Notes: a model not told the origin generated them from the letters alone. 64,000 bases of DNA from Epithemia pelagica (GCA_946965045.2 OX337242.1:2604001-2668000), one strand, 5' to 3'. Positions 22,401-63,761 are shown, numbered from the stretch's first letter. Translations and numbers: made by a program.

Positions 22401-23757
22401 GCAAACCTACGGCTTGGATTACTTCGAAACCTATGCACCTGTTGTCCAATGGATAACAATTCGGCTTGTGTTGTTGATGGTTCTTGTGTACAACTGGGAA
22501 ACGGTGCAAACCGACTACACCAATGCATTTGCCCAAGCCTTCCTCACAGAGGATGTCTATATGGAGCTACCAAAGGATTTTGCACCAGACACTGAGGACG
22601 GAGAGGAGTATGTCTTGCATCTCAAGAAGAGTCTCTACGGCTTGAAGCAAGCACCCCTTTCGTGGTATGACCACCTTAAGGGTCATTTAGAACAACGTGG
22701 ATTCAAGCAGAGCGCATTTGATCCTTGTCTCTTCTACGAACCAACCAAACGAATCCTATGCCTCGTTTACATTGATGATGTAATTTGGGCTGGACCAGAC
22801 AAAGCACGCATTATGAAAGTGTTGGAATCATTGAAAGACGATTTAGAGATGACAGTTGAAGGTGACGTATCGGCGTACCTCGGAATTGACTTCGAACGTC
22901 TCAACAACGGGCAAATCAAGTTGAAGCAATACGGGCTTATCGATAAAGTATTGAACGCGACCGGGCTGCAAGATTGTAACCCAGACAAGACTCCAGCGAG
23001 TCAAAAGCCGCTTGGTAAAGACCAAGACGGAGAGGACTACGCAGAACAGTGGAGCTACGCGTCAGTGGTCGGTATGTTGCTGTATTTGGCGTCCAACTCA
23101 CGCCCAGAGATTGCCTACGCAGTGCACCAGTGTGCTAGATTCACACACAACCCCAAGGCATCACATGCCAAAGCAGTCAAACGCATCTGCCAATATTTGA
23201 AGGGAACAAGAGATCAAGGGATGATCCTAACTCCCTCAAAGGATTGCCTGTCAGTTGATTGTTATGTGGATGCTGATTTCGCGGGGCAGTGGAACAGTGA
23301 GGATCCACAGGATCCGCTTTGCGTGAAGTCAAGGACCGGCTATGTTTTGATGGTTGGTGATTGTCCAGTCCATTGGGTGTCTAAATTGCAGACAGAAATT
23401 GCCGTATCTACCATGGAGGCCGAGTACATCGCCCTCAGCCTTGCCATGAGAGACCTCATTCCACTACGGGGTTTAGTGGATGAAATCAAAACCATGTTCA
23501 ACATTGATGAGCTCCCTTGCAGAGCATACTCAAAAGTATTTGAGGACAACAACGGAACCATCTTGTTGGCCACATCACCACGAATGACTCCTCGCTCCAA
23601 ACATATCGCAGTCAAGTACCATTTCTTCAAAGAGCATGTGTACAATGGCAACATCCGCTTGGTCAAAGTCGCATCGGACGAACAAGTGGCGGATTGTTTG
23701 ACAAAAGGACTGGATAAGACTCTATTTCAACGAGCGAGAAAGATGTTGGCCGGATAG
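19461..23757 (+). pseudogene. Copia pol (protease, integrase, RT, RNase H) with one frameshift
   Basis: Motifs IDSGAT, WHYRLCH..CASC, SMDHF, QSDNG, NGIAER, KARLCVRGD, YIDDV and YVDADFAG. A frameshift near 20984 (FG|VTVQAYQSDNG) splits ORFs 19461-21011 and 20794-23757. Confidence 0.95.
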
Positions 23758-42565: not shown

Positions 42566-45500
42566 ATGGATCCTCAATCACCCAAGACACCGTTTACTCC
42601 TCCTGAGGACAAGTCAAGTCATATAACCAACCAAGATCTCTTCGACCATATAACTAAAGGCATCTTTGATTGTAATGATGAACGAGCCCAATCACTTCAA
42701 AAGTGGATGCGACATCATGGTTTTGAACATATCCTTCATGTCCTCGACCATGTTGCAACTGATCCCGAGGAGACACTCAAGGATCTCATGCAATACAAGG
42801 TTGGAAAACAAGTCAACGACCTACAGACAAGTACAAGATTACAACTCAAACTAATGGCATATTGGTTACTACAACAACGGCAACTCCAACATGGAAAACT
42901 ACCCCGTGCTACATGGATGAACCTCACGAGGGACCAATATGACGATTGGAGGATCAACACCGACTTTACCAAGTCTGGTATGAACCAAGACCCAGTTTCT
43001 CCTCTGAAATCACCTACACACTCCGTATCATCCCGATCTCCCACTACATCCTCTACAACATCTCAATCCATGTTAGATCTCTCTGCTTTCAAGAAAGGAA
43101 CCAAAAGAGATGCAACAACATTTGAATCATTCAAAGACGAACGATACTTTGATTTGTTTTGGCGTGTATTCAAATCAACTGCGAAAGCACAAGGATTGTC
43201 GAATGTTCTTGATTTCGATTACAAGGTACCCAAGGATGACGAATGCGCAGAGTTACTTTTCCGAGAACAACAAGTCTTTGTCTATTCTGTACTTGTACGT
43301 ATTATCCAAACCGACCAAGGAAGAGCATATGTTCGAGAACATGAACATGATGAAGATGCAAGAGCCGTCTTGAAGAAACTCCATGTTCTACACACTGAAT
43401 CTGATCTAGCTAAGCGAGAAGTGTTACGCCTAACAAGCTACATTTCGAATCTTCGACTGGATGACTCTTGGCGTGGTACAACTCGTCAGTTTCTCCTACA
43501 TTTTCAAGAACAGCTACGACTTCTGGATAACCTTGTACCACTGTCGGATCGTATCCATGACCATACAAGGATGACCTTCCTTATGCAAGCTGTTGAAAAG
43601 GTACCTGATTTAAGACGAGTCAAGATCTTGGATAACGTTGTCAACACAAAATCTGGAGCCAAGTCTCTCTGTTATCAATCATATTTCCGCCTGCTTCTTG
43701 ATGCTGCTTTTGACCACGACCAAGCTACCCGAACTTCTGCGTCTAACCGCCGTCGTCATGTAAAGCAACATGAATTTCAGTTGGATGAACCTTTTGAACC
43801 AGTGGAGCCCCCTGACTGCCAGATCAACAACACGAATATCCAATCCGAAAAGTCCCCAACTTCGTCGAAAATCAGCCTTCCAAGAGATGTATGGTTTAAA
43901 CTCTCTGAAGAGGATCGGCAAATCATTGTCGACTTCAATAAATCCGTCCAAGATTCCCCGACAACTCCACGCAAGGTCCAAACACATTCTCTTGACATTG
44001 ATCCTGAACCGGACCCTGATCCTGATGCCAACAACATTGGTGATACCCATCAAGATGCACCAGAACAAGATCCATTCGATACATCCTCTGATCCGGTTAC
44101 CCAGTTCGTACACCAGGCTATTGCATCGACAGATATCAATCATCCAGCATCTGACCTCAGCAACATCTTGTCAACTTCTACGACAAAGTCAAGTCCTAAA
44201 GTCAAGTTCAAGTCTTCTGCCGATCACAAGCAAAAGGTTCATATGTCACGATATCTATTCTCCCGCAAATCCACCTTTTCTGGTAATCAACTCATCGATC
44301 GAGGTGCCAATGGAGGCCTTGCAGGATCTGACATGCGTATCCTTGCCAAAACCGGACGTCATATTACCATCGTAGGTATTGACAATCATGAATTGACTGG
44401 CCTTCCAGTTGTTACCTGTGCTGCCAAGTTTGATACAAGTGATGGACCCATTATTGGTATCTTCAATGAGTATGCCCACTATGGAAAGGGTTTATCTATC
44501 CATGCCCCAGCGCAATTTGAACATTTCGGCCTATCTGTCGACGAACGATCCGTCAAGGTTGATGGCAAACAACGCATTACTACCCTTGATGGACGTGCAT
44601 TGCCCTTACGAATCAAGGATGGCCTTGCATACATTCAATCTCTGGGAATCCCTTCTGATGACGATATGGATAAATATCCGCATATTGTGTTCACTTCACC
44701 CCATATCTGGGATCCTTCTGTACTTGACCATACCCATCCAGACCCCCATCAAGACCCTGCACCGAACTGGACATCTGTGGAGACTGATGGTAGTATGGAA
44801 ACGTACCCCTATGACCAATATGGGGAGTATACCGATCGCGTTGTATGCACTTTGAATCTCCTCCTTGATCTCCCATATGATCATGGCCCCGATACACCTT
44901 CCTTCTTTTCCATCTATGCTGATCAAGATGGCAACGACCCCACACTTCATGCGTCTGTCCACAAACTCTACAAGGAACAATACGACTGGAAGAAATTTCG
45001 CCCTTTCTTTGGGTGGCAATCGGAAGACGTAATCGCCGATACGTTCAAGCATACAACTCGTCATGGACACATTTCCTTTGACCAGGGTACCTTGAAGAAA
45101 CACTTTAAGGCCCGGAATCCTATCCTTAACCTACCACGACGGCATGAACCCGTTGCCACTGACTCCATCTTCTCCGACACCCCGGCTGTTAACCATGGTG
45201 GCAAGATTGCTCAGATTTTTGTTGGTCGTGATACTTTGGTTACTGACATTTATGGTATCAAGTCTACCAAGCAATTCGTCAATACCCTCCAGGATAACAT
45301 TCGTACACGTGGTGTCATGGAGACTTTGATCAGTGATGGTGGTTCGTCACTTATTTCCCACAAGGTCAAGGATATTCTTCGCACCCTTCTGATTGGTGAA
45401 TACCGTTCCGAGCCCTATCATCAACACCAGAACAAAGCTGAGAACCGCTACCAGACCGTTAAGCGTATGACCAATGCTATCATGAATGCCTCTGGTTGCC

Positions 45501-47392
45501 CTGCTTCTGCATGGTTACTTTGTTTAGAATATGTGTGTGACCTCCTCAATCACACTTCCTCTCCCACCCACTCTGGCCGCACCCCTCTTGAGGCTCTCAC
45601 CGGTACCCCACCCGACATTACCCATCTCCTTTTCTTTCCTTTCTGGGATGAGGTCTACTATCGTGTCGACCCTTCTGAACCTACCTCCGGTTCTTACCCT
45701 TCGTCTCCCGACGAGAAGATTGGCCACTGGGTTGGTTTTGCCCACAATGTTGGTGATGCCTTTACTTGGAAGATCCTCACTGCCGACAACGTCATCATCT
45801 ACCGTTCCGCTGTCCGTCGCGTTGCCTCCACTACCCCCAACCTTCGTGTGGATATCTCTTCAGGGGAGGAGTCGCCGCATAAACCCACTGACAAGCAAGG
45901 TGACACTGTCTTTATTCGCAGCAGAAGTGAAGACCCATCCACACCTATGCCAACAATTGACTACGACGATTTAGTTGGACGCACATTCCTTTGTGACACT
46001 GAAGAGAATGGGGAGCGCCACCGAGCACGAGTAATCAAACGAGTTGTCGACCTGGAACAAGATGCAACCAAACAAGAAGATCGACTCAAATATATCTTTC
46101 GCAAGTCTAACTCCAATGTTGATGAGATGATCTCCTACAACCAGCTCATGGAATACATTGAAAGGGATAATCAAGCCAAAATAACAGGGGATAGTCTCTT
46201 CCGATTCAGAGACGTTATTGCACACCAAGGACCTTTGAACTCAAGCAACCCAGACTATAAAGGGAGTAAATATAATGTCCTTGTTGATTGGGAGACTGGG
46301 GAGACGACATACGAACCTCTATCTCTTATTGCAAATGATGACCCCATCACAGTCGCCATCTATGCCAAGAAAAATGGTTTGCTGGATCTACCTGGATGGA
46401 AACATCTCAAGCGATACGTCAAGACAAGCAAAAGACTCATTCGAGCAGCTAAACAATCCAGGATCAAACAAGTTCGTCGCTCTATCAAGTACAACTTTGG
46501 TTTCCAAGTACCTCGCACCTATGAAGAAGCAGTGGAACTAGACAAGCAATTTGGGAACACGAAATGGCAAGACGCAACAGAATTGGAACTCTCACAGATC
46601 CAATCGTATAACACTTTCAAGGACCATGGAAAAGCCAAGTTCATTAATGGGAAATTGGCCAATGCACCAGAAGGATATCATAAGATAAGAGTACATCTGG
46701 TCTTTGATGTCAAGCATGACGAAAGGCACAAGGCACGACTTGTCGCAGATGGACATCTCACCAAGGAACCCATTGAGACCATCTATTCAGGGGTTGTCTC
46801 CATTTGCAACCTTCGCATTGCCATATTTCTTGGAACCATGAACGACATGGAAATATGGGGAGCAGATAATGGGAACGCATACCTAGAAGCATTGACAGGA
46901 GAGAAGATTTTCATCATTGCAGGACCAGAGTTCAAGGAGTTAGAAGGACATATCTTGATCATCTACAAGGCATTATATGGTCTCAAATCCTCAGGTGCTC
47001 GCTGGCATGACAGACTGTTTGATGTTCTCATTGATATGGGATTTTCTCCAAGCAAGGCTGACCCTGATATTTGGATGAAGAAAGCTCCTGGAGAAGACTG
47101 TTATGAATATATCGCTGTATATGTTGATGACTTAGCTATCGTTGCCATGGACCCTGAAGCTGTCTGCAAGATCTTTACAGAAAAATACAACTTCAAACTC
47201 AAAGGAGTCGGACCTATCGAGTATCATTTGGGGTGTCGTTATACCAAAGATCCAGACGGTACACTTGTGTCTGACCCACGAAGGTACATCGAGAAGATGA
47301 TGGATAAGGAAAAATCCAGGAAAGTGATGAGGGAATTGACAATCCTCATTCGACGAATTGTGGGGAGTGTTAGGATTCTCACCGAAAACTAG
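42566..47392 (+). CDS. Copia gag-pol polyprotein (1608 aa), truncated in RT
   Basis: Gag, protease LIDRGANGG, integrase ATDSI/ISDGG/NKAENR and RT YVDDL. After RYIEKMMD the frame jumps to the pre-LTR segment and ends inside the LTR. Confidence 0.95.
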   Translation: MDPQSPKTPFTPPEDKSSHITNQDLFDHITKGIFDCNDERAQSLQKWMRHHGFEHILHVLDHVATDPEETLKDLMQYKVGKQVNDLQTSTRLQLKLMAYWLLQQRQLQHGKLPRATWMNLTRDQYDDWRINTDFTKSGMNQDPVSPLKSPTHSVSSRSPTTSSTTSQSMLDLSAFKKGTKRDATTFESFKDERYFDLFWRVFKSTAKAQGLSNVLDFDYKVPKDDECAELLFREQQVFVYSVLVRIIQTDQGRAYVREHEHDEDARAVLKKLHVLHTESDLAKREVLRLTSYISNLRLDDSWRGTTRQFLLHFQEQLRLLDNLVPLSDRIHDHTRMTFLMQAVEKVPDLRRVKILDNVVNTKSGAKSLCYQSYFRLLLDAAFDHDQATRTSASNRRRHVKQHEFQLDEPFEPVEPPDCQINNTNIQSEKSPTSSKISLPRDVWFKLSEEDRQIIVDFNKSVQDSPTTPRKVQTHSLDIDPEPDPDPDANNIGDTHQDAPEQDPFDTSSDPVTQFVHQAIASTDINHPASDLSNILSTSTTKSSPKVKFKSSADHKQKVHMSRYLFSRKSTFSGNQLIDRGANGGLAGSDMRILAKTGRHITIVGIDNHELTGLPVVTCAAKFDTSDGPIIGIFNEYAHYGKGLSIHAPAQFEHFGLSVDERSVKVDGKQRITTLDGRALPLRIKDGLAYIQSLGIPSDDDMDKYPHIVFTSPHIWDPSVLDHTHPDPHQDPAPNWTSVETDGSMETYPYDQYGEYTDRVVCTLNLLLDLPYDHGPDTPSFFSIYADQDGNDPTLHASVHKLYKEQYDWKKFRPFFGWQSEDVIADTFKHTTRHGHISFDQGTLKKHFKARNPILNLPRRHEPVATDSIFSDTPAVNHGGKIAQIFVGRDTLVTDIYGIKSTKQFVNTLQDNIRTRGVMETLISDGGSSLISHKVKDILRTLLIGEYRSEPYHQHQNKAENRYQTVKRMTNAIMNASGCPASAWLLCLEYVCDLLNHTSSPTHSGRTPLEALTGTPPDITHLLFFPFWDEVYYRVDPSEPTSGSYPSSPDEKIGHWVGFAHNVGDAFTWKILTADNVIIYRSAVRRVASTTPNLRVDISSGEESPHKPTDKQGDTVFIRSRSEDPSTPMPTIDYDDLVGRTFLCDTEENGERHRARVIKRVVDLEQDATKQEDRLKYIFRKSNSNVDEMISYNQLMEYIERDNQAKITGDSLFRFRDVIAHQGPLNSSNPDYKGSKYNVLVDWETGETTYEPLSLIANDDPITVAIYAKKNGLLDLPGWKHLKRYVKTSKRLIRAAKQSRIKQVRRSIKYNFGFQVPRTYEEAVELDKQFGNTKWQDATELELSQIQSYNTFKDHGKAKFINGKLANAPEGYHKIRVHLVFDVKHDERHKARLVADGHLTKEPIETIYSGVVSICNLRIAIFLGTMNDMEIWGADNGNAYLEALTGEKIFIIAGPEFKELEGHILIIYKALYGLKSSGARWHDRLFDVLIDMGFSPSKADPDIWMKKAPGEDCYEYIAVYVDDLAIVAMDPEAVCKIFTEKYNFKLKGVGPIEYHLGCRYTKDPDGTLVSDPRRYIEKMMDKEKSRKVMRELTILIRRIVGSVRILTEN

Positions 47393-51939: not shown

Positions 51940-53611
51940 GGGTAACCGTAGTGGCCCGTGCTTCACGTTTCCGATACTCGGTTGAACTTCCGGCCCTACG
52001 AGATTCACTACACCATACATTTTCGTAAAGTAAAATGAATTGCCCTCATGCTCTTGCACATTTTGTTGCGAGATTCTTCTCACCAACTGCACCCACACCA
52101 TCACCATGGTGAGGCGGCGCTAGCACAATAATCAACCCGCCTCCTCTACGAGTATGCATATAAACAGCTACTAGTACAGAACATCTATCTATCTTAGTAC
52201 ATGCTTCTCTGTGTCGTAGGTCGTACAATAGGCAATCGTTTCGGTGTTGAGTATGGTGCTGTTGCCGTGCCGTGGTCGCCGAATGTTTTGCCGTTTGGCC
52301 GAAACGAGCGGTTGATTGTTGAGTATGTCATTGTCGTCGGATGTCGCTGTCGTCGCTTGTCGTTGTCGCCGCTTGTCGTTGTTGCCGCTTGCTGTCTTGT
52401 CGCATGCCGTTGTCGTCGCTTGTCGTTGTCACCGCTTGCTGTTGTTGAAGGGCACAGTCTCGGGCAGAGGGTTCGGTGACAGCGAATAGTTGATTGTTGC
52501 GTGGGGGTTGTGGTTGTTGTTGCCGAGTGTTGTTTTTGTTGTTGTTTGTTCATTCGTTCGTTCGTTCGATCAGTGGCGGTGAGTAGTTGATTGTTGTGTT
52601 TGGATTTTTGTTGTCGCCGAGTGTTGTTGCTGTCGTTCATTCGTTCTTTCGTTCGTTCGTTCGTTCGTTCATTCGATCGATCGGCTGTGACATCGTCGCC
52701 GATTGTTTCGCCATTTGTAGTTGAGCCGCTTGTGGTTGTCGTTGTCGTCGCTTGTTACCACCAGTGGACGAGGCTTCGATTTGTTGGGTGAGGGCAACGA
52801 AAAGACGAGGAGTTGATTGTTTCGTCGCACGGTAGAAGAAGGAGGACGACCACACCATCTTGTCGCCGAGTCTTGCCGCCGAGTGTCGTTGTCGAGTGTT
52901 GTTGCCGAGTGTTGTTGTTGTTCGTTCGGTGGCAGCGAGGAGTGAGTAGTTGATTGTTGTGTTTGGGTTTTGGGTTGTTGTTGTTGTTGCCGAGTGTTGT
53001 CGACTCGCAAGGCTCTTCGACCATCGCCCATCAGCTTCACGGCATCCCCTCCTTCTTCCACTCAAATTGTGCTGTGGGAATCAGCCGCACCACCGGCACC
53101 ACCATCGTCTGTCGCAGTAGAAGCAGTCCTTCCACCCACGGTTCACGTTTGTTTTGTCTGGACAAATCAGCTTTTGTTGCGTTTGAGCCACCAACGGTCG
53201 AGGCTTTCCAATGTTGTGCTCGGTCTATTAAGTGACGAGGAGTTGATTGCTGCATGCGGACGTATGATCGGTGACTTGCTGGATGCATTCTATCGGTTGT
53301 CGTCGTCTTCTTCTCAAGGTCACTTCCTCTGTTTCGGATGCCAAATAAGGAAGACTTCAAAACCTTGCCGTCGGTCCATAAAAAAAGCCAACTCATCCCT
53401 GCCCGCCCATTCCCTCACGGTACACTTGATTCTTAGGCATCCTTGATGGTTGCAAGAGAGCTGGCACCTTTCGTTGGAGGTGCACACCGGCTTGAGTGTG
53501 TCATGGTGGTGTTACGCAGTGCAAAATGACCGTAGTGGTGTCCCTACGAAGTTAGAATCACTGTAGAAAAAACAGTGGGGGTATGAAAAGCACGGGCCAC
53601 TACGGTTACCC
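51940..53611. mobile_element. Non-autonomous TIR element B (1672 bp), internally related to A
   Basis: Perfect 24-bp TIR GGGTAACCGTAGTGGCCCGTGCTT, flanked by AT on both sides. It shares about 600 bp (53005-53600 vs 50475-51075) and about 70 bp near the left end with A. Confidence 0.85.
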
Positions 53612-53942
53612 ATGGAGCTCGTACTCCTCAGCGCACATTATATGAACATACAATAGACAAAGAATAAACTACTACAAGATGGGAAGTGGATCTTTGGGGA
53701 CCCAAGATTCCCTCCGTATCGGTGACCACCTCTAAATCGTCTGCCAGTCGTTCACCGAATTCTTCTCTGACCTGGTTTTTTTTCCTTTTGTCATACAAAT
53801 TTTTTGGTCAATTTCCTATTCTTCACGCCGGCATGGTATCTCCTTCGTCGGCATTGGCGCCTCGCCCGACTCGGAAACTGTCCAACCGCCTTTCTCCAAC
53901 TCTTTCAAATATGGCATCCAGATCCTTTCGATCAACTATAAG

Positions 53943-56501
53943 ATGACCATGACAACTGTTCCAATTGGAACAGCTCAAGATGCGCAAGCTGATGTTGATA
54001 ATGCCATCCATCGTCAGTTCAACTGGCAAGCCGAACTTTATTTCACAGACCTTGAAAACTTTGACAATCAAGCAATAGATCTGTTTCAATTCACTGATAA
54101 AAACCACTACCATTTTCGACGACAATCATCCAAATCAAAAAGTACTGAAGAACTGCCACATTTGGTTATCTTTGACAGAAAGAAATATCCTCCGAATGAT
54201 GACGGCATTAAGAGACTGTGCACAGCTCTAAAGATTGAGGGTATCAAATCAGGAACTAACCTTGTCTATCGCAGCCAAGCGCATGTTCTCTCTTGTTTCC
54301 GTTGTAGGAAACATGGTCCCCGACGTTCGAAAGTCATCCCATCTACCAACATCCCCGACCAACCAAATGGAAGCCCGATGGACAACAATGATACGGCACA
54401 GCCAGACAACATTCTATCAGACAAAACTTTCGACAATGACGGTGTCCGTCTTGGTATACGACCATACCGATACCACCGTGATCGGAGCATGAACCGTTGT
54501 GGTGGGAAATCATCTGTTCGGGGAACTTCGACAATGCGACCTGTTCATGCTGAAGAAACATGCAAAGTTGCACTGCGTCTTGGTGTGAAAGAGGGTCCTG
54601 ACGGGTACATATACCTCAAACAAGGGTGTGGACATCGACTTCATTCTTTCCACCCCAAACCACAAAAAGGTGATCTGTGTTTTGCTAAACGCCACATTTC
54701 CGACTCCACATACAAGCTCATCACCAGTGGTGCTAAAGTTTCTGTGGGCAATGGCTCTCTAAGATGCATTGTCTTAGAAAATCAAAGTGAGCTGATATCC
54801 CGTGGATCAATACAAAGAATTCGAATGGAGCCTGACTTCCTAACAAACAATGAGCAACGTGAGTCCACTGCTTCCCAGATGGTGCACTGGTTACGAAAGC
54901 ATGCAGCAGATCCAAATGTAGGATTGTGTTATTGCTTTCTCTCTTGCCGTCAAAGCAGATATCCCGGCTACCACCGACATCCCAAAGGAAGGCCTGGACA
55001 AACTGGAAGAATTCCTCTTGACAAAGTAGAGGAAAACATGGAATATGTGGATACTCTCGAGAATACCTATAGAACAGCTCAAAGTGTAGAACAATCACAA
55101 GAGCTCCCTTTGGACAACGATGCACTCAATCAGACATTGAACATGGCTCGAGAAATTCATAATGATTCATTGATTGATCTCGAAAGTCATAGAATTCTCC
55201 TGGGGGCAGGGTGGGTTGATGCTCAAGCCTTTGCCCAATTCCAAAGATTCCCCGAAGTTCTATTCATCGATTCCACCCATAAAACCAACAACGAAGCTCG
55301 TCCACTCCTCATGATTTGTGGCAGAGATCAGTCAGGGAAGGCATTTGTGGTTGCTCGAATATTTATGCCGAATGAGACCAGTGCATTTTACCGTTGGGTT
55401 TTCCTCAAGTGCCTGCCGTGTCTTCTTGGAGAAGCCAATCTAAAACGTGTGAAACTGGTAATCACTGATGGTGATGCCCAAGAGTTCGAAGCAGTTGAAG
55501 AGTCCTGCCTCCATTATCTGACGAATGCCTTCAGGGGGCGGTGTATGTACCATATTGTCCAAAAGACTTTTGAAAGAACTATCCCAAACTCAATTACATG
55601 TTCGCCACATGGTCTCTTTGTTCTCCAAGCTATTCGGACATGGATTTATACATGGGGTGACGGATCCTCATGTTCATCCGAGATACAATTTAGTCTCTCC
55701 AAAGATCTTTTGCTTAAGAAGATTGAATCGGACGAATTGTGTCATTCAATATCACCAGAGGGTCTGGCTCTCCTCGGAAAGTGGCTCGTAGAAAAAATTC
55801 TTCCAAATGAAAACACCTTTGCATTTTGGCGAAAGAGGTTCCATCGGTGTTTTGACGAGTACATGAACAATTCTGGTGAAGCCATGAATAGATCATGTAA
55901 ACATTCCGATGTTTCAACACGTCCAAATATGTCAATGGCATCATCTGCAAATGCTATGTTCACCCATTCAAGTTTGTCTGCAAAAGATCGACGCTGTGCA
56001 GCGCTTCGCCAGATGGTGGCGACTCCACTTTTCATCAAGGAAGGTTCATGTCACAACGTAGATATTCTTCAAAAATTATCCAACATGGCACGTCATATGC
56101 TTATACAGCAATATTCACAACGAAACAAGTATACTGTTCTCCGTCATTCAGAGAAAGTATGGTATATTCTCAGAAATTCTGTGTCACCATCTTCAGAATT
56201 CAAAACTAGAACAGTGGCTGGAATGGCTCCTCCCTCTTTCAAGACAGCTTGGCGTATGGAATTAAATAGTCAGGATATCTTGTGTTGCGAGTGTGGATAC
56301 AAACAGCGAAATGGAATACCGTGCCGCCATTTGTTCTGTGTTGAAGATGCATATGATTTGTCAGACATCTCAGTTCGATGGCAAATGGGGTACTCATATT
56401 ATGCATTTGTCTCTGAATATCCCTCCATTACAGAATCGTACTTACGTGGACATGACTCAGATCATGAGGGCATACGAATGAAGACTGATACATTTTATTA
56501 G
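53943..56501 (+). CDS. MULE-family DDE transposase with SWIM zinc finger (852 aa)
   Basis: PEVLFIDSTHKTN..PLL..GRD, VITDGD, RGRCMYH, MNNSGEAMN and the SWIM motif CCECGY...GIPCRH. An N-terminal C..C..HRLH region resembles a FAR1/WRKY-like DNA-binding domain. Confidence 0.92.
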   Translation: MTMTTVPIGTAQDAQADVDNAIHRQFNWQAELYFTDLENFDNQAIDLFQFTDKNHYHFRRQSSKSKSTEELPHLVIFDRKKYPPNDDGIKRLCTALKIEGIKSGTNLVYRSQAHVLSCFRCRKHGPRRSKVIPSTNIPDQPNGSPMDNNDTAQPDNILSDKTFDNDGVRLGIRPYRYHRDRSMNRCGGKSSVRGTSTMRPVHAEETCKVALRLGVKEGPDGYIYLKQGCGHRLHSFHPKPQKGDLCFAKRHISDSTYKLITSGAKVSVGNGSLRCIVLENQSELISRGSIQRIRMEPDFLTNNEQRESTASQMVHWLRKHAADPNVGLCYCFLSCRQSRYPGYHRHPKGRPGQTGRIPLDKVEENMEYVDTLENTYRTAQSVEQSQELPLDNDALNQTLNMAREIHNDSLIDLESHRILLGAGWVDAQAFAQFQRFPEVLFIDSTHKTNNEARPLLMICGRDQSGKAFVVARIFMPNETSAFYRWVFLKCLPCLLGEANLKRVKLVITDGDAQEFEAVEESCLHYLTNAFRGRCMYHIVQKTFERTIPNSITCSPHGLFVLQAIRTWIYTWGDGSSCSSEIQFSLSKDLLLKKIESDELCHSISPEGLALLGKWLVEKILPNENTFAFWRKRFHRCFDEYMNNSGEAMNRSCKHSDVSTRPNMSMASSANAMFTHSSLSAKDRRCAALRQMVATPLFIKEGSCHNVDILQKLSNMARHMLIQQYSQRNKYTVLRHSEKVWYILRNSVSPSSEFKTRTVAGMAPPSFKTAWRMELNSQDILCCECGYKQRNGIPCRHLFCVEDAYDLSDISVRWQMGYSYYAFVSEYPSITESYLRGHDSDHEGIRMKTDTFY

Positions 56502-58750
56502 TTGAGTGCTTCTTGAATAGAATCCGATAAATATTTGGTTCTGGTAGAGTGTTCAAATTTTTCATCAATACGGGCATGTTTGATTCCTTTTGATATCACA
56601 GCCTCATGCTTCATGTAAATTTCATGTCCCAATTTGAATGTCGCATCATAGGGCCATCGTACAACTAGAGGTCCAACGGTGTAAACAGACATGCCATTTT
56701 TCTTCCATAACACAACACCACTCTTTGTGGGCTCGTACACAATTTGATCGGCCCATACAAGATCAGTGAATCTTTGTGCTTCTTTGTGTTGGGCTTGAAA
56801 TATGTTGCACACAATACTCTCTGCATTTCTTCGGGAACAAAATTTTCCTGACACATCTTCAACGGCCTTTGTGAAAGAATCAAGCAGTTGTTTTGTCCCT
56901 TGTTCCCCTTTCCTCAAACCATATTCACGGCTCAAGAATTGAAAACCACATGATTCATGAGTACCTTGTATTTCGAAAGAATACCACAACGGGACACACC
57001 CAACAATGGACATTGCATTTATCAGATGATTAGTTCCCACGACACCACATGAAGGCAAACTTCCCTTCAATCCCTTTATAGTCATGTTGTATAAGTTTGC
57101 CCTTGTTTTCTTGTTTGTTGGTGCATCGTCATATCCGAATGATTGAATGCAGACAAATACCATATGCCGTATCTGTTCCTTAAACTGCTCGAAGGATGGT
57201 AGATTTGTTTCAGAACTTGTTGTAAATCGTGTCCCAGGGATTGGTTTCTTTGAATTTTTATACGAACCATATATCTCGTGAACTCTTTCCAATAGGTTGT
57301 ATCCAAATTCCAATCCGGTCTGCTTCAGCACAGGTCGCTGTAATACTTCAATAAGCGCAGCGGTAGCAAAGAACGTTGTGAAGGAACACAATGCAAAAGA
57401 CCGGAAGATGCATATGACCTCCACAAAATCAAGATGGAATTGTTTGATCATTCGCAAACTGTAGTGAATAATGGGAGACACATAGATGGACGCCTCTAAA
57501 TGACATGGATACAGACTGTAACCAATTCCGCACCAAGCACCATCACTCTTGGTTGTCGTTGCAAATGTTAATGGGCCAGTGTTTTTTCTTGCATCGTCAA
57601 TAGATTCATACCTGTGCAATAGGAATCGGAGAGACGGACCAATGTCTTCGTTCTCCCTGTGCTCTGCATCCAATATGGACTTCCTTGTAGCGGCAATTAC
57701 TGAAATTCTCAAAGAACGCACACCACATGGAACAACCTTGGAAAGAATCACAACCTCTGGAAAATTAGGATCATTGAGATCATCATCGTGAAAGCCACAT
57801 TGTCCAACTTCTGCTGAATTTACGTCTGTCGCAGCTATCCGAATGTATTCAATTACATTCTCCTTATCGATTCGCTTTGCATACCTTTCCAGTCGCTGGG
57901 TCGAACGGCCATGCCAAACATGAGGACAGTTTTGTTTGATCATTTTTGTCATTGTACAAAGTACCTTGACCATTATAGGGTCCATTGTTCCATCCAACAT
58001 CGAAGGACGTGACAGTCTGTGATTGGCCTTATCACGAGAAAAGGCACGACCACCACCAAACCCGGCATCTTGCCAGAGATGTTGTCGTGGCATATGCGTT
58101 GATCTGTCACTAACCATCCCCTCTTTCTGCAGAAGTAACAGAGAAGAAAGATCCTGCCATGGTATACCAATCTCCTCTATGATCCGTGTTTCAATAAATT
58201 GGAAGTCGGCTGAATTGGGTGGGAAAGAATCTTGCTTTGGAAAAACTGAATGGACGGGGATGATACATTCTTCTGGGAACTTGAAATCAGGTGCATTTGC
58301 AGTGAAATGCCCATGCGGAATGTGAAGTGATTTGGCCACTGTGCAGACTGTGACTTCATCCAATGGTTGGTAAATAGAAACAATGGAACTCATGTAGTCC
58401 AATCTGGCATGGAAAAAAGGACCTTCGGACATCATCTGCTTTTGTAGCGATCTGGGAACATCCTTCCACTTTTTTGATGGAATTTCAAAAAGGAATGGAA
58501 GAGCCATATTATACTTCACTGATGCTTTCTGATCCATCTTGTGCTTCTTGGAAACGTGCTTAGGCTGACGTTCTGCATCAATAATCTCACGCGATGTGGA
58601 AGTACTTATGTCTCGTGGAACCGACTGGGTCTCGACAGGAACCTTATCAACACTCGACCAACTTGTGTCTCCATCAAGTAGATCAGCAATAACACGGAGA
58701 AGACCAGATACCTTCCAACAACGACCCTCATCAACGAGTAATCGATCCAT
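56498..58750 (-). CDS. Transposon accessory protein (750 aa), function unknown
   Basis: Uninterrupted ORF inside the TIRs, convergent with the transposase and overlapping its end by 4 bp. It contains GFHDDDLND..RISVIAATRKS. Confidence 0.8.
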   Translation of the reverse strand: MDRLLVDEGRCWKVSGLLRVIADLLDGDTSWSSVDKVPVETQSVPRDISTSTSREIIDAERQPKHVSKKHKMDQKASVKYNMALPFLFEIPSKKWKDVPRSLQKQMMSEGPFFHARLDYMSSIVSIYQPLDEVTVCTVAKSLHIPHGHFTANAPDFKFPEECIIPVHSVFPKQDSFPPNSADFQFIETRIIEEIGIPWQDLSSLLLLQKEGMVSDRSTHMPRQHLWQDAGFGGGRAFSRDKANHRLSRPSMLDGTMDPIMVKVLCTMTKMIKQNCPHVWHGRSTQRLERYAKRIDKENVIEYIRIAATDVNSAEVGQCGFHDDDLNDPNFPEVVILSKVVPCGVRSLRISVIAATRKSILDAEHRENEDIGPSLRFLLHRYESIDDARKNTGPLTFATTTKSDGAWCGIGYSLYPCHLEASIYVSPIIHYSLRMIKQFHLDFVEVICIFRSFALCSFTTFFATAALIEVLQRPVLKQTGLEFGYNLLERVHEIYGSYKNSKKPIPGTRFTTSSETNLPSFEQFKEQIRHMVFVCIQSFGYDDAPTNKKTRANLYNMTIKGLKGSLPSCGVVGTNHLINAMSIVGCVPLWYSFEIQGTHESCGFQFLSREYGLRKGEQGTKQLLDSFTKAVEDVSGKFCSRRNAESIVCNIFQAQHKEAQRFTDLVWADQIVYEPTKSGVVLWKKNGMSVYTVGPLVVRWPYDATFKLGHEIYMKHEAVISKGIKHARIDEKFEHSTRTKYLSDSIQEALN

Positions 58751-58754
58751 TTCA

Positions 58755-61700
58755 GAGAGTCACTGTTCGGACCCAATATACTGTCCCAATGGACTAGTAT
58801 AGGGTCCTTTGAGATGAGGATCGAGCCAGGCCAAGCAACCAATCACCAGAAATCAAGAATCAACCTCAGTCAACCTCAGTGAATGGTGCCCACTGGTCCA
58901 GATGGCAGCTGTAACCCAAAAGAGGACAAGAAAATTTTTCAGCCGAGAGTCACTGTTCGGACCCAATTTACTGTCCCAATAGACTAGTATAGGGTCCTTT
59001 GAGATGAGGATCAAGCCAGATCAAGCAACCAATCACCAGAAATCAAGAATCAACCTCAGTCAATGGTTCCCACTGGTCCAGATGGCAGCTGTAACCCAAA
59101 AGAGGACGAGAAAATTTTTCAGCCGAGAGTCACAGTTCGGACCCAATATACTGTCCCAATAGACTAGTATAGGGTCCTTTGAGATGAGGATCAAGCCAGG
59201 TCAAGCAACCAATCACCAGAAATCAAGAATCAACCACAGTCAATGGTGCCCACTGGTCCAGATGGCAGCTGTAACCCAAAAGAGGACAAGAAAATTTTTC
59301 AGCCGAGAGTCACTGTTCGGACCCAATATACTGTCCCAATAGACTAGTATAGGGTCCTTTGAGATGAGGATCAAGCCAGATCAAGCAACCAATCACCAGA
59401 AATCAAGAATCAACCACAGTCGATGGTTCCCACTGGTCCAGATGGCAGCTGCAACCCAAAAGAGGACGAGAAAATTTTTCAGCCGAGAGTCACTGTTCGG
59501 ACCCAATATACTGTCCCAATAGACTAGTATAGGGTCCTTTGAGATGAGGATCAAGCCAGATCAAGCAACTAATCACCAGAAATCAACAATCAACCTCAGT
59601 CAATGATGCCCACTGGTCCAGATGGCAGCTGCAACCCAAAAGAGGACGAGAAAATTTTTCAGCCGAGAGTCACTATTCGGACCCAATATACTGTCCCAAT
59701 AGACTAGTATGGGGTCCTTTGAGATGAGGATCGAGCCAGGCCAAACAACCAATCACCAGAAATCAAGAATCAACCTCAGTCAATGGTGCCCACTGGTCCA
59801 CATAGCAGCTGCAACCCAGAAGAGGACGAGAAAATTTTTCAGCCAAGAATCACTGTTCGGACCCATTATACTGTCCCAATAGACTAGTAGAGGGTCCTTT
59901 GAGATGAGGATCAAGCCAGATCAAGCAACTAATCACCAGAAATCAAGAATCAACCTCAGTCAATGGTGCCCACTGGTCCAGATGGCAGCTGTAACCCAAA
60001 AGAGGACGAGAAAATTTTTCAGCCGAGAGTCACTATTCGGACCCAATTTACTGTCCCAATAGACTAGTATAGGGTCCTTTTAGATGAGGATCAAGCCAGG
60101 TCAAGCAACCAATCACCAGAAATCAAGAATCAACCACAGTCAATGGTGCCCACTGGTCCAGATGGCAGCTGCAACCCAAAAGAGGACGAGAAAATTTTTC
60201 AGCCGAGAGTCACTGTTCGGACCCAATATACTGTCCCAATAGACTAGTATAGGGTCCTTTGAGATGAGGATCAAGCCAGATCAAGCAACCAATCACCAGA
60301 AATCAAGAATCAACCACAGTCAATGGTTCCCACTGGTCCAGATGGCAGCTGCAACCCAAAAGAGGACGAGAAAATTTTTCAGCCGAGAGTCACTATTCGG
60401 ACCCAATTTACTGTCCCAATAGACTAGTATAGGGTCCTTTTAGATGAGGATCAAGCCAGGTCAAGCAACCAATCACCAGAAATCAAGAATCAACCACAGT
60501 CAATGGTGCCCACTGGTCCAGATGGCAGCTGCAACCCAAAAGAGGACGAGAAAATTTTTCAGCCGAGAGTCACTGTTCGGACCCAATATACTGTCCCAAT
60601 AGACTAGTATAGGGTCCTTTGAGATGAGGATCAAGCCAGATCAAGCAACCAATCACCAGAAATCAAGAATCAACCACAGTCGATGGTTCCCACTGGTCCA
60701 GATGGCAGCTGCAACCCAAAAGAGGACGAGAAAATTTTTCAGCCGAGAGTCACTGTTCGGACCCAATATACTGTCCCAATAGACTAGTATAGGGTCCTTT
60801 GAGATGAGGATCAAGCCAGATCAAGCAACTAATCACCAGAAATCAACAATCAACCTCAGTCAATGATGCCCACTGGTCCAGATGGCAGCTGCAACCCAAA
60901 AGAGGACGAGAAAATTTTTCAGCCGAGAGTCACTATTCGGACCCAATATACTGTCCCAATAGACTAGTATAGGGTCCTTTGAGATGAGGATCGAGCCAGG
61001 CCAAACAACCAATCACCAGAAATCAAGAATCAACCTCAGTCAATGGTGCCCACTGGTCCAGATAGCAGCTGCAACCCAGAAGAGGACGAGAAAATTTTTC
61101 AGCCAAGAATCACTGTTCGGACCCATTATACTGTCCCAATAGACTAGTATAGGGTCCTTTGAGACAAGGATCAAGCCAGGTCAAGCAACCAATCACCAGA
61201 AATCAAGAATCAACCTCAGTCAATGGTGCCCACTGGTCCAGATGGCAGCTGTAACCCAAAAGAGGACGAGAAAATTTTTCAGCCGAGAGTCACTGTTCGG
61301 ACCCAATATACTGTCCCAATAGACTAGTATAGGGTCCTTTGAGATGAGGATCAAGCCAGATCAAGCAACCAATCACCAGAAATCAAGAATCAACCACAGT
61401 CGATGGTTCCCACTGGTCCAGATGGCAGCTGCAACCCAAAAGAGGACGAGAAAATTTTTCAGCCGAGAGTCACTGTTCGGACCCAATATACTGTCCCAAT
61501 AGACTAGTATAGGGTCCTTTGAGATGAGGATCAAGCCAGATCAAGCAACTAATCACCAGAAATCAACAATCAACCTCAGTCAATGATGCCCACTGGTCCA
61601 GATAGCAGCTGCAACCCAAAAGAGGACGAGAAAATTTTTCAGCCGAGAGTCACTATTCGGACCCAATATACTGTCCCAATAGACTAGTATGGGGTCCTTT

Positions 61701-62972
61701 GAGATGAGGATCGAGCCAGGCCAAACAACCAATCACCAGAAATCAAGAATCAACCTCAGTCAATGGTGCCCACTGGTCCAGATAGCAGCTGCAACCCAGA
61801 AGAGGACGAGAAAATTTTTCAGCCAAGAATCACTGTTCGGACCCAATATACTGTCCCAATAGACTAGTATAGGGTCCTTTGAGATGAGGATCAAGCCAGA
61901 TCAAGCAACCAATCACCAGAAATCAAGAATCAACCACAGTCAATGGTTCCCACTGGTCCAGATGGCAGCTGCAACCCAAAAGAGGACGAGAAAATTTTTC
62001 AGCCGAGAGTCACTATTCGGACCCAATATACTGTCCCAATAGACTAGTATAGGGTCCTTTGAGATGAGGATCAAGCCAGGTCAAGCAACCAATCACCAGA
62101 AATCAACAATCAACCTCAGTCAATGGTGCCCACTGGTCCAGATGGCAGCTGTAACCCAAAAGAGGGCGAGAAAATTTTTCAGCCGAGAGTCACTGTTCGG
62201 ACCCAATATACTGTCCCAATAGACTAGTATAGGGTCCTTTGAGATGAGGATCAAGCCAGGTCAAGCAACCAATCACCAGAAATCAACAATCAACCTCAGT
62301 CAATGGTGCCCACTGGTCCAGATGGCAGCTGCAACCCAAAAGAGGACGAGAAAATTTTTCAGCCGAGAGTCACTGTTCGGACCCAATATACTGTCCCAAT
62401 AGACTAGTATAGGGTCCTTTGAGATGAGGATCAAGCCAGATCAAGCAACTAATCACCAGAAATCAACAATCAACCTCAGTCAATGGTGCCCACTGGTCCA
62501 GATGGCAGCTGCAACCCAAAAGAGGACGAGAAAATTTTTCAGCCGAGAGTCACTATTCGGACCCAATATACTGTCCCAATAGACTAGTATGGGGTCCTTT
62601 GAGATGAGGATCGAGCCAGGCCAAACAACCAATCACCAGAAATCAACAATCAACCTCAGTCAATGGTGCCCACTGGTCCAGATAGCAGCTGCAACCCAGA
62701 AGAGGACGAGAAAATTTTTCAGCCAAGAATCACTGTTCGGACCCAATATACTGTCCCAATAGACTAGTATAGGGTCCTTTGAGACAAGGATCAAGCCAGG
62801 TCAAGCAACCAATCACCAGAAATCAACAATCAACCTCAGTCAATGGTGCCCACTGGTCCAGATGGCAGCTGTAACCCAAAAGAGGACGAGAAAATTTTTC
62901 AGCCGAGAGTCACTATTCGGACCCAATATACTGTCCCAATAGACTAGTATAGAGTCCTTTGAGACAAGGATC
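58755..62972. repeat. Tandem array of 180-bp units (23 full plus 1 partial)
   Basis: Units start at 58755, 58945 and then every 180 bp to 62905. Identity is high, and stops occur in all six frames of the unit. Confidence 0.98.
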
Positions 62973-63761
62973 TGACAGAATCAAGCAAAAAGCAACAACC
63001 AAATGATCCTTCGAATGAGTTGCTTGTTGAAGCCAACACAAATTCAAAGTCAATGAAAAAAGAGTTGCTGGAAAGAGATTGCCCTTGCAAGTAGAGCAAT
63101 GAGTGCCTTTGAGCGTTATGCAAAGCTATTCAAATATTCGATCATTCCAAAAGACTTATCTTACAAGACTGTTTTAGCAACAAGATCGACAAAACTGTCC
63201 ATTGTCCATTGTTATGCTGCACTGCACCCATTCAATTTTTGGTGGGTGGGAAGTTTCGAGTGGCAGTTGGTGGTGAGGAAAAATGGGGACGCCAGCCAAG
63301 CCAACACTCGATGAAATTTTTCCTCTTGTGGGAAAGGAAATTTGGTGCGAAAGACAGACTTGGGGAAGGACGACTGTCAGACGATTTAGAGGTGGTCACC
63401 GATACAGAGCCAATAAGGCCATAACCCAGCCAGATTCTTTCCCTGTTCCCTCCTGTTGCCTCAAGAGAGCATTTATGTAAAACTGACAGTTCGCATAGAT
63501 TTTCTTCGGATCATTATTATTTGGCCATAAGAAGAAAATGGCCTGATATTCGCATTTAAGCCTGATTAATCATGATAATTGGTAGCGAATTGTCCGTTCG
63601 TATACTACGTCGCGCATGGTTGGGGAAGCGAGAGTCCAACCAAAACAACGATCAGCCACACACCAAGAAAAAAAGAGAGGCAATCATTTTGGATATCATA
63701 AAACCCAAATCCAACAAACTCACTCACTCGCTCACTTTCATTACCAAAAGCCCAAGTCAAA

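Follow-up and report, generated by a model that had tools for sequence, protein, structure and literature searches.

Whether a transposase gene, a convergent accessory gene and a large internal tandem array can belong to one working unit, and what the array would then do, is the question raised by the locus described here. Multi-gene Mutator-like elements (MULEs) are known, and to our knowledge the function of an extra gene is understood in one case only, that of VANC. The locus lies in a 64,000-nucleotide window, by which we mean the whole stretch of DNA that was analysed, and it extends from terminal inverted repeat (TIR) to TIR over positions 53712..63409 (Table 1). It is one copy of a MULE-superfamily DNA transposon and belongs to a family of young, multi-copy, large (9–10 kb) elements in a eukaryotic genome (ENA assembly ERZ21939226). 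A first-pass annotation had described a composite MULE consisting of a transposase, a convergent accessory gene (ORF2) and an internal array directly before the ORF2 start codon; this description is borne out by the PF10551 match in ORF1 (54.5 bits, against a cut-off of 27.6), by the coordinates of the two ORFs, and by the position and extent of the array. Matches to PF10551 and PF21056 recur in the 1035-aa form of the transposase and in its relatives, and the SWIM-type stretch, too weak for the Pfam cut-off in the window copy, reaches 20.9 bits in a relative of 42% identity (L010), above the cut-off of 19.6.

Table 1. Features of the element copy in the window (positions counted from the first nucleotide of the window).
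Feature	Position	Strand	Remarks
Flanking CC	53710..53711	.	GG on the ORF2-sense strand; dinucleotide flanks both ends in 5/5 insertions examined
TIR, transposase side, 40 nt	53712..53751	+	identical in sibling copies L002/L005/L006
MULE transposase ORF, C-terminally truncated	53943..56501	+	852 codons, ~848 native; 1035 in complete copy L005
MULE DDE/RNase-H-like catalytic domain, residues 439-541	55257..55565	+	PF10551 E 1.6e-14; PF21056 E 7.6e-11
SWIM-type zinc-finger-like stretch, residues 780-797	56280..56333	+	15.4 bits, below Pfam cut-off 19.6
Junction of the 1,967-bp deletion relative to copy L005	56492..56493	.	5-6 bp beyond the ORF2 stop codon
ORF2, 750 aa, accessory gene of an uncharacterised protein family	56498..58750	-	convergent with the transposase ORF
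180-bp tandem array, 23.5 units	58755..62988	-	95% matches; 4 bp from the ORF2 ATG; grown by 4-5-unit block duplications
Unique subterminal region	62989..63369	-	terminal part 63150-63411 has 71% identity to diverged lineage L001
TIR, ORF2 side, 40 nt	63370..63409	-	inverted-repeat match to the transposase-side TIR
Flanking CC	63410..63411	.	counterpart of 53710..53711

The ends of the element are sharply defined. An inverted repeat pairs 53707-53751 with 63370-63414, and its 40-nt core (53712-53751 and 63370-63409) matches at 38 of 40 positions, the value reported earlier. A scan of the window found the 28-nt core of the TIR at these two places only (expected by chance, 0). At 40 nt, the TIRs of this family are shorter than the usual MULE TIR, which is given as >100 bp (PMC6446971). 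Neither Rfam families nor tRNAs were found within the window. The canonical target-site duplication (TSD) of MULEs is 8–11 bp. At five independent insertions with unrelated flanks, in copies whose TIRs are identical, the footprint was GG/CTC...GAG/GG in every case (slashes at the element ends), with no longer direct repeat, and a search for a 9-bp TSD at any offset found none. Judged from these junctions, the flanking CC/GG would be either a 2-bp TSD or a target preference. The family thereby departs from the MULE rule, which its sister family in the same genome (L010) obeys with the 9-bp TSD TCTCTCTGT.

Both ORFs had also been called intact, which holds insofar as both are open (852 and 750 aa); the transposase, however, is truncated compared to that of L005. 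The complete form, represented by L005, comprises a 40-nt TIR, a 1035-aa MULE transposase with a SWIM-like stretch, a 97-bp tandem array, a convergent 750-aa ORF2, the ~180-bp array, ~380 bp of unique DNA and the second TIR, with the 97-bp array placed between the 3′ ends of the two genes. Relative to this form, the window copy is a deletion derivative that still has its two TIRs, ORF2 and the 180-bp array: the 1,967-bp deletion took the 97-bp array as a whole, along with the final ~187 codons of the transposase, and the window transposase aligns to L005 residues 1–848 before entering the complement of the ORF2 3′ end. The 4-bp overlap of the two window ORFs exists because the deletion fused the transposase into this complement, and the 97-bp array, a fourth part of the element, escaped the first-pass annotation because the window copy has lost it. 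In comparison with lineage L001, the transposase has a dN/dS of 0.14 (dS ~1.0–1.2), including the C-terminal part that the window copy is missing. Since these conserved ~187 residues are gone, movement of the window copy probably depends on a complete copy.

The same assembly contains at least four young copies, 99% identical in unique DNA and located on four contigs with unrelated flanks, together with older lineages whose transposases have 76% (L001), 55% (L011) and 42% (L010) identity to that of the window family. In each of the four young copies, and likewise in the 76% and 55% lineages, a transposase is combined with an ORF2 homologue and a ~180-bp array directly upstream of the latter. 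The survey of co-occurrence that had been proposed, carried out here within this assembly, thus found the three parts together, and absence of the array or of ORF2 from other copies, named beforehand as the refuting outcome, was not observed. We are very probably dealing with a multi-gene MULE family of conserved tripartite layout, and because this layout recurs in old relatives within the same genome it is probably functional. The family is apparently an active DNA transposon family outside plants and animals, of which the window copy itself is a slightly damaged member. An exact scan of JGI metagenomes for the core of the 180-bp unit returned 0 matches.

ORF2 has 164 cluster representatives in its family at E≤1e-3 and 20 at E≤1e-30, and its dN/dS of 0.21 against L001 (dS ~1.0–1.2) indicates purifying selection. 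The relatives fall in multi-member clusters with fragments, a pattern typical of transposon genes. One of them sits between 52-nt TIRs in a 9.4-kb element, where it runs convergently to a large ORF showing a weak MULE-type RNase-H-like match. On these sequence comparisons, ORF2 is a real transposon gene under selection, and the family to which it belongs is large and unnamed. The partner genes of its distant homologues (L003, L008 and L009) showed no relation to each other or to the window transposase in phmmer and BLASTP searches; among them, a weak RNase-H-like match was seen in L009 only.

The protein has a variable, disordered N-terminus (aa 1–77), a conserved alpha/beta domain (aa ~78–420), a helical domain (420–660) and a small beta domain (662–707); in relatives, the variable N-terminus carries tandem peptide repeats (29 aa × ~4 in L001, 24 aa × 4 in L004). 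AlphaFold gave a pLDDT of 86 and a pTM of 0.82 for the whole protein and 88 and 0.86 for the N-domain. No match to ORF2 was found in Pfam, NCBIfam, the PDB or BFVD: the Pfam search was empty for ORF2 (E≤0.1) and, with the limit raised to E≤1, for 40 family members (ORF2 and 39 relatives), and the PDB fold search was empty for both the whole model and the N-domain. As modelled, the fold is confidently predicted and matches nothing solved. The alpha/beta domain contains H146, H321-x-D323-xx-N326 and many Arg, and the near-invariant positions of the family alignment are H321, D323, N326, R348, R356, G483, R508, G584 and P587. These conserved H/D/N/R residues look more like those of an enzyme than those of a plain DNA binder, and, taking only this residue pattern as a guide, we consider the odds that ORF2 is catalytic to be even; no fold or profile match to any enzyme was found. 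The H-x-D-xx-N motif recalls, as we read it, the 2OG/Fe(II) dioxygenases, including TET/JBP. Identification of ORF2 as a TET/JBP-like or other 2OG dioxygenase is retained as a tentative lead only, as it found no Pfam, fold or profile support: Tet_JBP, 2OG-FeII, JmjC and cupin matches are absent from the 40 family members, and hhalign against a host AlkB-like oxygenase gave a probability of 0.05%.

Near the start of the accessory gene, arrays of near-equal period occupy the equivalent position in four lineages. The array has 9.4–23.5 units of 180 bp in the four young copies, 1.8 units of 182 bp in L001 (43 bp from the ATG), 7.4 units of 177 bp in L011 (directly upstream of a decayed ORF2) and 3.8 units of 175 bp in L010, where the adjoining accessory ORF is non-homologous to ORF2. 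Units are 93–98% identical inside arrays and not alignable between distant lineages, a comparison by which the ~180-bp arrays evolve in concert, homogeneous within a lineage. The 180-bp and 182-bp units can be aligned (z 5.6–5.9) despite saturated synonymous sites, and it is in the alignable segment that the unit varies least (rank 5 among 180 windows). Comparison of the 177-bp and 175-bp units with the 180-bp unit found no sequence similarity, so the homology of those arrays to the 180-bp array is based on position and period only. Because L010 combines an array with a non-homologous ORF, and because no comparable array was found beside the distant ORF2 homologues in L009, L008 and L003, the array appears to follow the MULE clade rather than ORF2. 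Other arrays at the loci examined have periods of 12 to 280 bp, and those inside elements include arrays of 97 bp, 87 bp (coding) and 61 bp, the 97-bp array being homologous between lineages in both period and sequence.

The content of the units offered few leads. A 9-mer of the ORF2-side TIR was found in 8 of the 14 units of the 97-bp array (estimated chance of one such match, ~0.02–0.04), and the match was not reproduced in L001 or L010. As the 180-bp unit also has no robust k-mer or motif in common with the TIRs, amplification of a TIR motif in the arrays was rejected. The same holds for a palindrome (GGACCCTAT...ATTGGGTCC) considered as a protein-binding site of the 180-bp unit: neither here nor in the units of other lineages does the top inverted repeat surpass what shuffles give. 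Single-strand folding of the unit does not exceed chance (z 0.23), the repetition apart, no short motif is conspicuous, and derivation of the unit from a duplicated ORF2 5′ coding region was discarded when no similarity was detected.

The explanation we prefer, with a probability of about 0.5, is that of a multi-gene MULE family in which the accessory gene is controlled from the ~180-bp array upstream of it. The element would retain the array as a platform bearing many copies of cis-elements that host factors or one of its own proteins (the transposase or the accessory protein) recognise, and this recognition would keep the accessory gene, and hence the element, expressed, while unit number drifted through unequal exchange. 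For ORF2, a role as an enzyme with nucleic acid or chromatin as its substrate would be more likely than one as a simple DNA-binding protein, and ORF2 would serve the propagation of the element. Considering the sequence evidence, we lean slightly towards maintenance of the array by selection, and we regard binding of the array by ORF2 itself as quite unlikely.

The arrays could instead be neutral minisatellites, in which a slippage-prone stretch was duplicated once in an ancestor and its copy number has drifted ever since; the array would then have no role, and ORF2 would work independently of it. Unit numbers range from 1.8 to 23.5, the elements show a general tendency to tandem repetition in their other arrays, and the units have no significant structure or motif. 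Further observations also speak against a control-region role: unit number differs 2.5-fold among copies that are 99% identical and is only 1.8 in L001, and the surplus units of the window copy are plain block duplications, as expected of a neutral minisatellite. Neutrality is less easily reconciled, however, with an array at the equivalent place and of near-equal period (175, 177, 180 and 182 bp) in four lineages saturated at synonymous sites, when other arrays of the same loci vary so widely in period, or with a unit of which part, the least variable segment, can still be aligned at dS >1 when the two closest lineages are compared; we consider it possible but somewhat doubtful. Should the array be a host target, a nucleosome-length (~175–182 bp) repeat that draws small RNAs or heterochromatin and silences the accessory gene, its length being tuned by host-element conflict, a period that is near the nucleosome repeat length and conserved while the sequence is not would be accounted for, and in plants tandem repeats are known to give rise to siRNAs and to be targeted by RdDM (PMC10398659). 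An element is not expected to retain a silencing target over long times, though, and with support that is circumstantial we hold this to be highly improbable.

Two further alternatives assign the array to a protein of the element. If it were a transposase-binding platform comparable to subterminal repeats, with the transposase as regulator or synapsis protein and ORF2 as an unrelated passenger or helper enzyme, it would be expected to follow the transposase clade, as L010 suggests; the TIR 9-mer in the 97-bp array and the homology of that array between lineages are consistent with this, and a MULE transposase by itself is reported to activate cognate copies sequence-specifically (preprint 10.64898/2026.08.24.746577). 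The 180-bp unit, however, has no robust k-mer in common with the TIRs, the TIR match is confined to the window family when L001 and L010 are compared, and the 97-bp array is lost from the window copy, which makes this account unlikely. The anti-silencing proposal of the first-pass annotation, in which ORF2 is a VANC-like sequence-specific protein that binds motifs in its own 180-bp array and strips silent marks from family copies, gains from the joint presence of ORF2 and array in every young copy and in the lineages of 76% and 55% identity, from arrays that, like the targets of VANC, change in unit number and evolve in concert (PMC5735166, PMC10398659), and from an ORF2 that, as VANC, combines conserved domains with a variable N-terminus bearing tandem peptide repeats in relatives. 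VANC domains are DUF1985 and DUF287 (PMC5735166), and neither these nor any other Pfam domain is present in ORF2 and 39 relatives. The array beside a non-homologous ORF in L010, the array-free distant homologues, the enzyme-like core of ORF2, the lack of a salient short motif and the truncated transposase of the window copy count against the proposal as well, and we judge it quite improbable.

Under the preferred control-region reading as under the others, ORF2 is a concrete target for structural and functional work, coming from a large unnamed transposon-associated family and having a confident model that matches nothing solved. The four lineages with conserved position and period and diverged sequence, and young copies with 9–23 units, form a natural series for the function of the array. 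Should the array and the protein prove to be coupled, sequence-specific anti-silencing would have arisen independently here; should they prove uncoupled, the element would stand as a well-documented satellite seed inside a transposon. By analogy, ORF2 might even found a new enzyme class, carried by transposons, modifying chromatin or nucleic acid and unseen in its fold; in this MULE clade it would be targeted to or regulated through a co-evolving nucleosome-length array, as an independent VANC-analogous anti-silencing system outside plants; we regard this as a very long shot.

Among known systems, MuDR of maize (mudrA/mudrB) is similar in having a MULE-domain transposase with a convergent second gene inside the TIRs, and in the coexistence of deletion derivatives with complete copies. 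It differs in its ~200-bp TIRs, against 40 nt here, in its 9-bp TSD and in its plant host, whereas the present family has large internal tandem arrays and an ORF2 for which no similarity to any named protein was found, in a comparison that covered sequences other than MURB. VANDAL21/Hiun and VANDAL6 of Arabidopsis (VANA, VANB, VANC; PMC5735166, PMC10398659) are likewise MULEs with extra genes, with non-coding tandem repeats whose unit number changes from copy to copy (9.4–23.5 units here) and whose sequences evolve in concert, and with an accessory protein made up of a conserved core and a variable, repeat-prone region. Unlike VANDAL elements, the present element, known from sequence alone, has TIRs, an accessory protein without DUF1985 and DUF287, units of 175–182 bp in place of short motif repeats, and an array that also occurs beside a non-homologous accessory ORF (L010). 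The mobile MULE of the stramenopile Phaeodactylum tricornutum (bioRxiv 10.1101/2023.01.02.522487) shares the MULE transposase with a SWIM-type stretch, a lineage-restricted accessory ORF and the coexistence of full and deleted copies; it is 3.7 kb long with ~200-bp TIRs and a 9-bp TSD, compared to 9–10 kb, 40-nt TIRs and no 9-bp TSD here, and its accessory ORF is a different one, UBR-type E3-ligase-like, with no large arrays reported. The Repbase 'MULE-Diatoms' (group 37, Dupeyron et al. 2019, PMC6446971) are also stramenopile SWIM-type MULE transposases and are entered as 'No TSD'; with one ORF, 123–124-bp TIRs and no accessory gene or arrays described, they are set apart by description only. 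Lastly, the En/Spm (CACTA) element with its TnpA belongs to another superfamily and has short subterminal motifs at both ends rather than one 180-bp array at a gene start, but it too combines an element-encoded second protein and repeated internal cis-sites into a regulatory module.

By its transposase, its terminal inverted repeats (TIRs) and its mobility, the element is a MULE. The transposase ORF (ORF1) matched the Pfam families PF10551 MULE (E 1.6e-14) and PF21056 (E 7.6e-11), with a sub-threshold match to a SWIM finger in the window copy. A single long-range inverted repeat was found in the window, and a 28-nt pattern from the TIR core has two sites there, both of them TIRs, with 0 expected by chance. 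The 180-bp array is the sole large array within the 64-kb window and ends 4 bp from the ATG of the convergent accessory ORF (ORF2). The TIR match, the two open ORFs and this spacing all bear out what the first-pass annotation had read from the sequence. The surroundings are transposon-rich, with three Copia-type ORFs; they also hold an alpha-kinase ORF of 736 aa (domain E 9e-35) that includes a VWA-like region and is probably a host gene, and GC-skewed, T-rich short tandem repeats to the left of the element (units of 16/47 bp, 4 bp and 13/26 bp).

Coordinates of the window copy, its relatives and neighbouring features
Feature	Location	Strand	Details
ORF1 (transposase)	window 53943..56501	+	852 aa; ORF listing
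ORF2	window 56498..58750	-	750 aa; ORF listing
180-bp array	window 58755..62988		23.5 copies, 95% matches, no indels; Tandem Repeats Finder
Long-range inverted repeat	window 53707-53751 paired with 63370-63414
TIR core	window 53712-53751 / 63370-63409		40 nt, 38/40 matching
GG flanks	window 53710-53711, 63410-63411; ends of L001, L002, L005, L006		AT-rich context WWGG/element/GGWW
Deletion junction	window 56492/56493		1,967 bp, relative to L005
97-bp array	L005:12305-13665, L002:12305-13180, L006:12304-13163, L001:12499-12919		4.3-14 units; absent from window
Copia-type ORFs	window 19461-23757, 36139-39618, 42566-47392		RVT_2, gag-pre-integrase, rve
Alpha-kinase/VWA-like ORF	window 27158-29368	-
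Short tandem repeats	window 52326-52442, 52633-52918
ORF with weak DDE_Tnp_1_7 match	L002:4077-6278		733 aa
In-frame repeat, ORF2 family	L001:10058-10406		87 bp = 29 aa, x 4
In-frame repeat, ORF2 family	L004:1167-1452		72 bp = 24 aa, x 4
L010 element	L010:9746-16372		6.6 kb
L010 near-perfect inverted repeat	L010:15706-15755 / 16259-16308		50 nt
L009 element	L009:537-9942		9.4 kb
L003 ORF2-homologue locus	L003:6142-13998

Two protein clusters were matched by ORF2, at 99% and 61% identity. Of the five members of the 99% cluster, one is identical to the window ORF2 and lies on contig ctg1301l of ENA assembly ERZ21939226, which is the window's own locus; the remaining members led to three further copies on other contigs (L002, L005 and L006), with 99% identity in unique DNA, the same TIRs and unrelated flanks. 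The complete form is L005 (9,283 bp), which carries a stop-free 1035-aa transposase, a 750-aa ORF2, a 97-bp array of 14.0 units between both stop codons, and a 180-bp array of 10.4 units. Compared with this reference, the window copy lacks 1,967 bp, at a junction 5-6 bp past the ORF2 stop; the deletion removed the entire 97-bp array and the final ~187 codons of the transposase, so the earlier statement that both ORFs are intact holds for ORF2 and fails for the transposase. The 4-bp overlap of the window ORFs is due to this deletion. The missing C-terminus is collinear with that of the older lineage L001, with a dN/dS of 0.14, and is real coding sequence. L002 is interrupted at codon 315 by an in-frame stop, and L006 retains only transposase residues 1-427 and a broken ORF2, which leaves L005 as the only undamaged copy among the four young ones. 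The window copy, though its TIRs are intact, is probably non-autonomous. The L002 copy has an ORF with a weak piggyBac-type match approximately 1.4 kb beyond its end.

Older lineages in the same assembly place these parts in a longer history. L001 has the same part order, with 61% amino-acid identity in ORF2 and 76% across the whole 1035-aa transposase, and its arrays comprise 1.8 units of 182 bp, 43 bp upstream of the ORF2 ATG, and 4.3 units of 97 bp between the genes. A transposase search recovered two more lineages, L011 (55% identical) and L010 (42%). L011 retains a decayed convergent ORF2 homologue (HMM positions 12-301 and 524-640) with a 177-bp x 7.4 array directly upstream. L010 has 57-nt TIRs, a 979-aa transposase and convergent ORFs (335 and 204 aa) that do not resemble ORF2 and had no Pfam or NCBIfam match; upstream of these is a 175-bp x 3.8 array. 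On the comparison of these lineages, a transposase with a convergent ORF and an upstream array is an old architecture. L010 additionally contains a 61-bp x 2.2 repeat and a near-perfect inverted repeat. At L011 we observed a guanylate-cyclase/phosphodiesterase gene pair and a nearby DDE_Tnp_4 (Harbinger-type) ORF. Such a gene pair side by side is typical of diatoms and, together with the Copia-type elements, hints at a diatom host.

The array sequences themselves have turned over. The 180-bp and 182-bp units can be aligned (score 32-34 vs 18 +/- 2.5 in shuffles), the 177-bp and 175-bp units could not be aligned with those of other lineages, and identity within arrays is 93-98%; we read this pattern as an inherited array evolving in concert. 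The 97-bp unit aligns in the same register between the window family and L001 (score 56 vs 14.9 +/- 2.4) and is, on that alignment, clearly homologous. As dS between the window family and L001 is about 1.0-1.2, any surviving non-coding similarity suggests constraint, and the part of the 180-mer that can be aligned also varies least (rank 5 among 180 windows, from 51 units). Recurring unit signatures in the window array (W_23/18/14/07, then W_22/17/13/06, then W_16/12/05) indicate growth from ~10 to 23.5 units through block duplications of 4-5 units. Occurrence of the 180-mer is confined to copies of the element, and a scan of JGI metagenomes for the unit core did not find it. Within the unit, no inverted repeat or single-strand fold better than chance was detected, nor any similarity to the ORF2 5' coding region or robust k-mer in common with the TIRs. 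One 9-mer of the ORF2-side TIR is present in 8 of 14 units of the young-family 97-bp array, a match with an estimated chance probability of a few percent that was not reproduced in other lineages.

When 1.84 billion representatives were scanned exhaustively with HMMER, 164 relatives of ORF2 passed E<=1e-3, of which 76 passed E<=1e-10 and 20 passed E<=1e-30 (residues ~84-720). Those looked up were metagenome proteins, either nameless or "hypothetical"; they often belong to 90% clusters that have several members, some of them truncated, a pattern usual for transposon genes. In alignments H321, D323, N326, R348, R356, G483, R508, G584 and P587 are near-invariant, and H146, E89, D228, E301, C318, C416, H575, E644, C648 and roughly ten arginines are well conserved, which suggests a candidate metal- or phosphate-binding active site; with modest confidence, we infer that ORF2 is an enzyme. 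AlphaFold modelled the whole protein from 150 sequences with pLDDT 86 and pTM 0.82, placing a disordered segment (28-77) before an alpha/beta domain, a helical domain and a small beta domain; the N-domain alone gave pLDDT 88 and pTM 0.86. Foldseek returned nothing at E<=0.001 from PDB (lowest E 0.06 with the whole model and 0.018 with the N-domain, TM <=0.12) or BFVD (lowest E 0.04). No sequence match to PDB chains was obtained by phmmer or profile, none to Pfam for ORF2 or 45 relatives (40 relatives checked at E<=1), and none to NCBIfam for ORF2. A comparison with one host AlkB-like oxygenase gave no support for kinship (hhalign probability 0.05%). Purifying selection acts on all three parts of ORF2 (dN/dS 0.19-0.30). 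The variable N-terminus of ORF2-family proteins carries in-frame repeats in L001 and L004; that of the window ORF2 has one degenerate repeat copy and a KKHK basic cluster.

Distant ORF2 homologues occur in other settings. One (~22-25% identity) lies in a metagenomic element, L009, with 52-nt TIRs and no recognisable target-site duplication (TSD), alongside a 355-aa ORF, a RING-finger ORF and a convergent 1132-aa ORF. The latter has a C2H2 finger and a weak ZSWIM1-3 RNase-H-like match (E 0.0028), and aligns with the window-family transposase over the MULE core at an E of only 0.82. At L003 a homologue with 31% identity adjoins a convergent 1126-aa PIF1-family helicase gene, and this locus possibly represents a Helitron-like element or another type that carries a helicase; at L008 the homologue is convergent with an 888-aa ORF without matches. 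No mutual kinship was detectable among the partner genes at these three loci, so genes of the ORF2 family are carried by elements of more than one kind. Tandem repeats are found ~210 bp upstream of the L003 homologue (127 bp x 2.9) and on both sides of the L004 homologue, besides its coding repeat. A ~180-bp array at the start codon is absent from the loci of these distant relatives, making it a feature of this MULE clade.

What the array and ORF2 do can be read in several ways. The first-pass annotation proposed that ORF2 resembles VANC and counters silencing through its own array. Part of that analogy stands, in that the arrays turn over and diverge in concert and ORF2 joins a conserved core to a variable N-terminus prone to repeats (PMC5735166; PMC10398659). 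However, ORF2 contains neither DUF1985 nor DUF287, the sole homology test at hand, and L010 keeps its array beside a different accessory ORF, so we consider this model improbable. It is plausible instead that the array serves the transposase, since a MULE transposase has been reported to act alone as a sequence-specific activator (10.64898/2026.08.24.746577). Somewhat likelier than the VANC-like model, though still doubtful, is that the arrays are neutral minisatellites: this would account for the variation in unit number but leaves the long persistence of array position and period unexplained.

The insertion footprint sets the family apart. The defining 8-11-bp TSD is missing, as all five insertions read GG/CTC...GAG/GG and no 9-bp duplication was found at them. 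Repbase lists "No TSD" for diatom MULEs (PMC6446971), and an experimentally mobile P. tricornutum MULE has a 9-bp TSD (10.1101/2023.01.02.522487). Unlike the window family, its 42%-identical sister family L010 has a canonical 9-bp TSD.

Accessory genes of MULEs include mudrB, mutB, vanB/vanC and an E3-like ORF of P. tricornutum, and with such genes already known the element does not constitute a new category. Its novelty lies in the protein family of ORF2, in the conserved array with its nucleosome-length unit and in the unusual insertion footprint.
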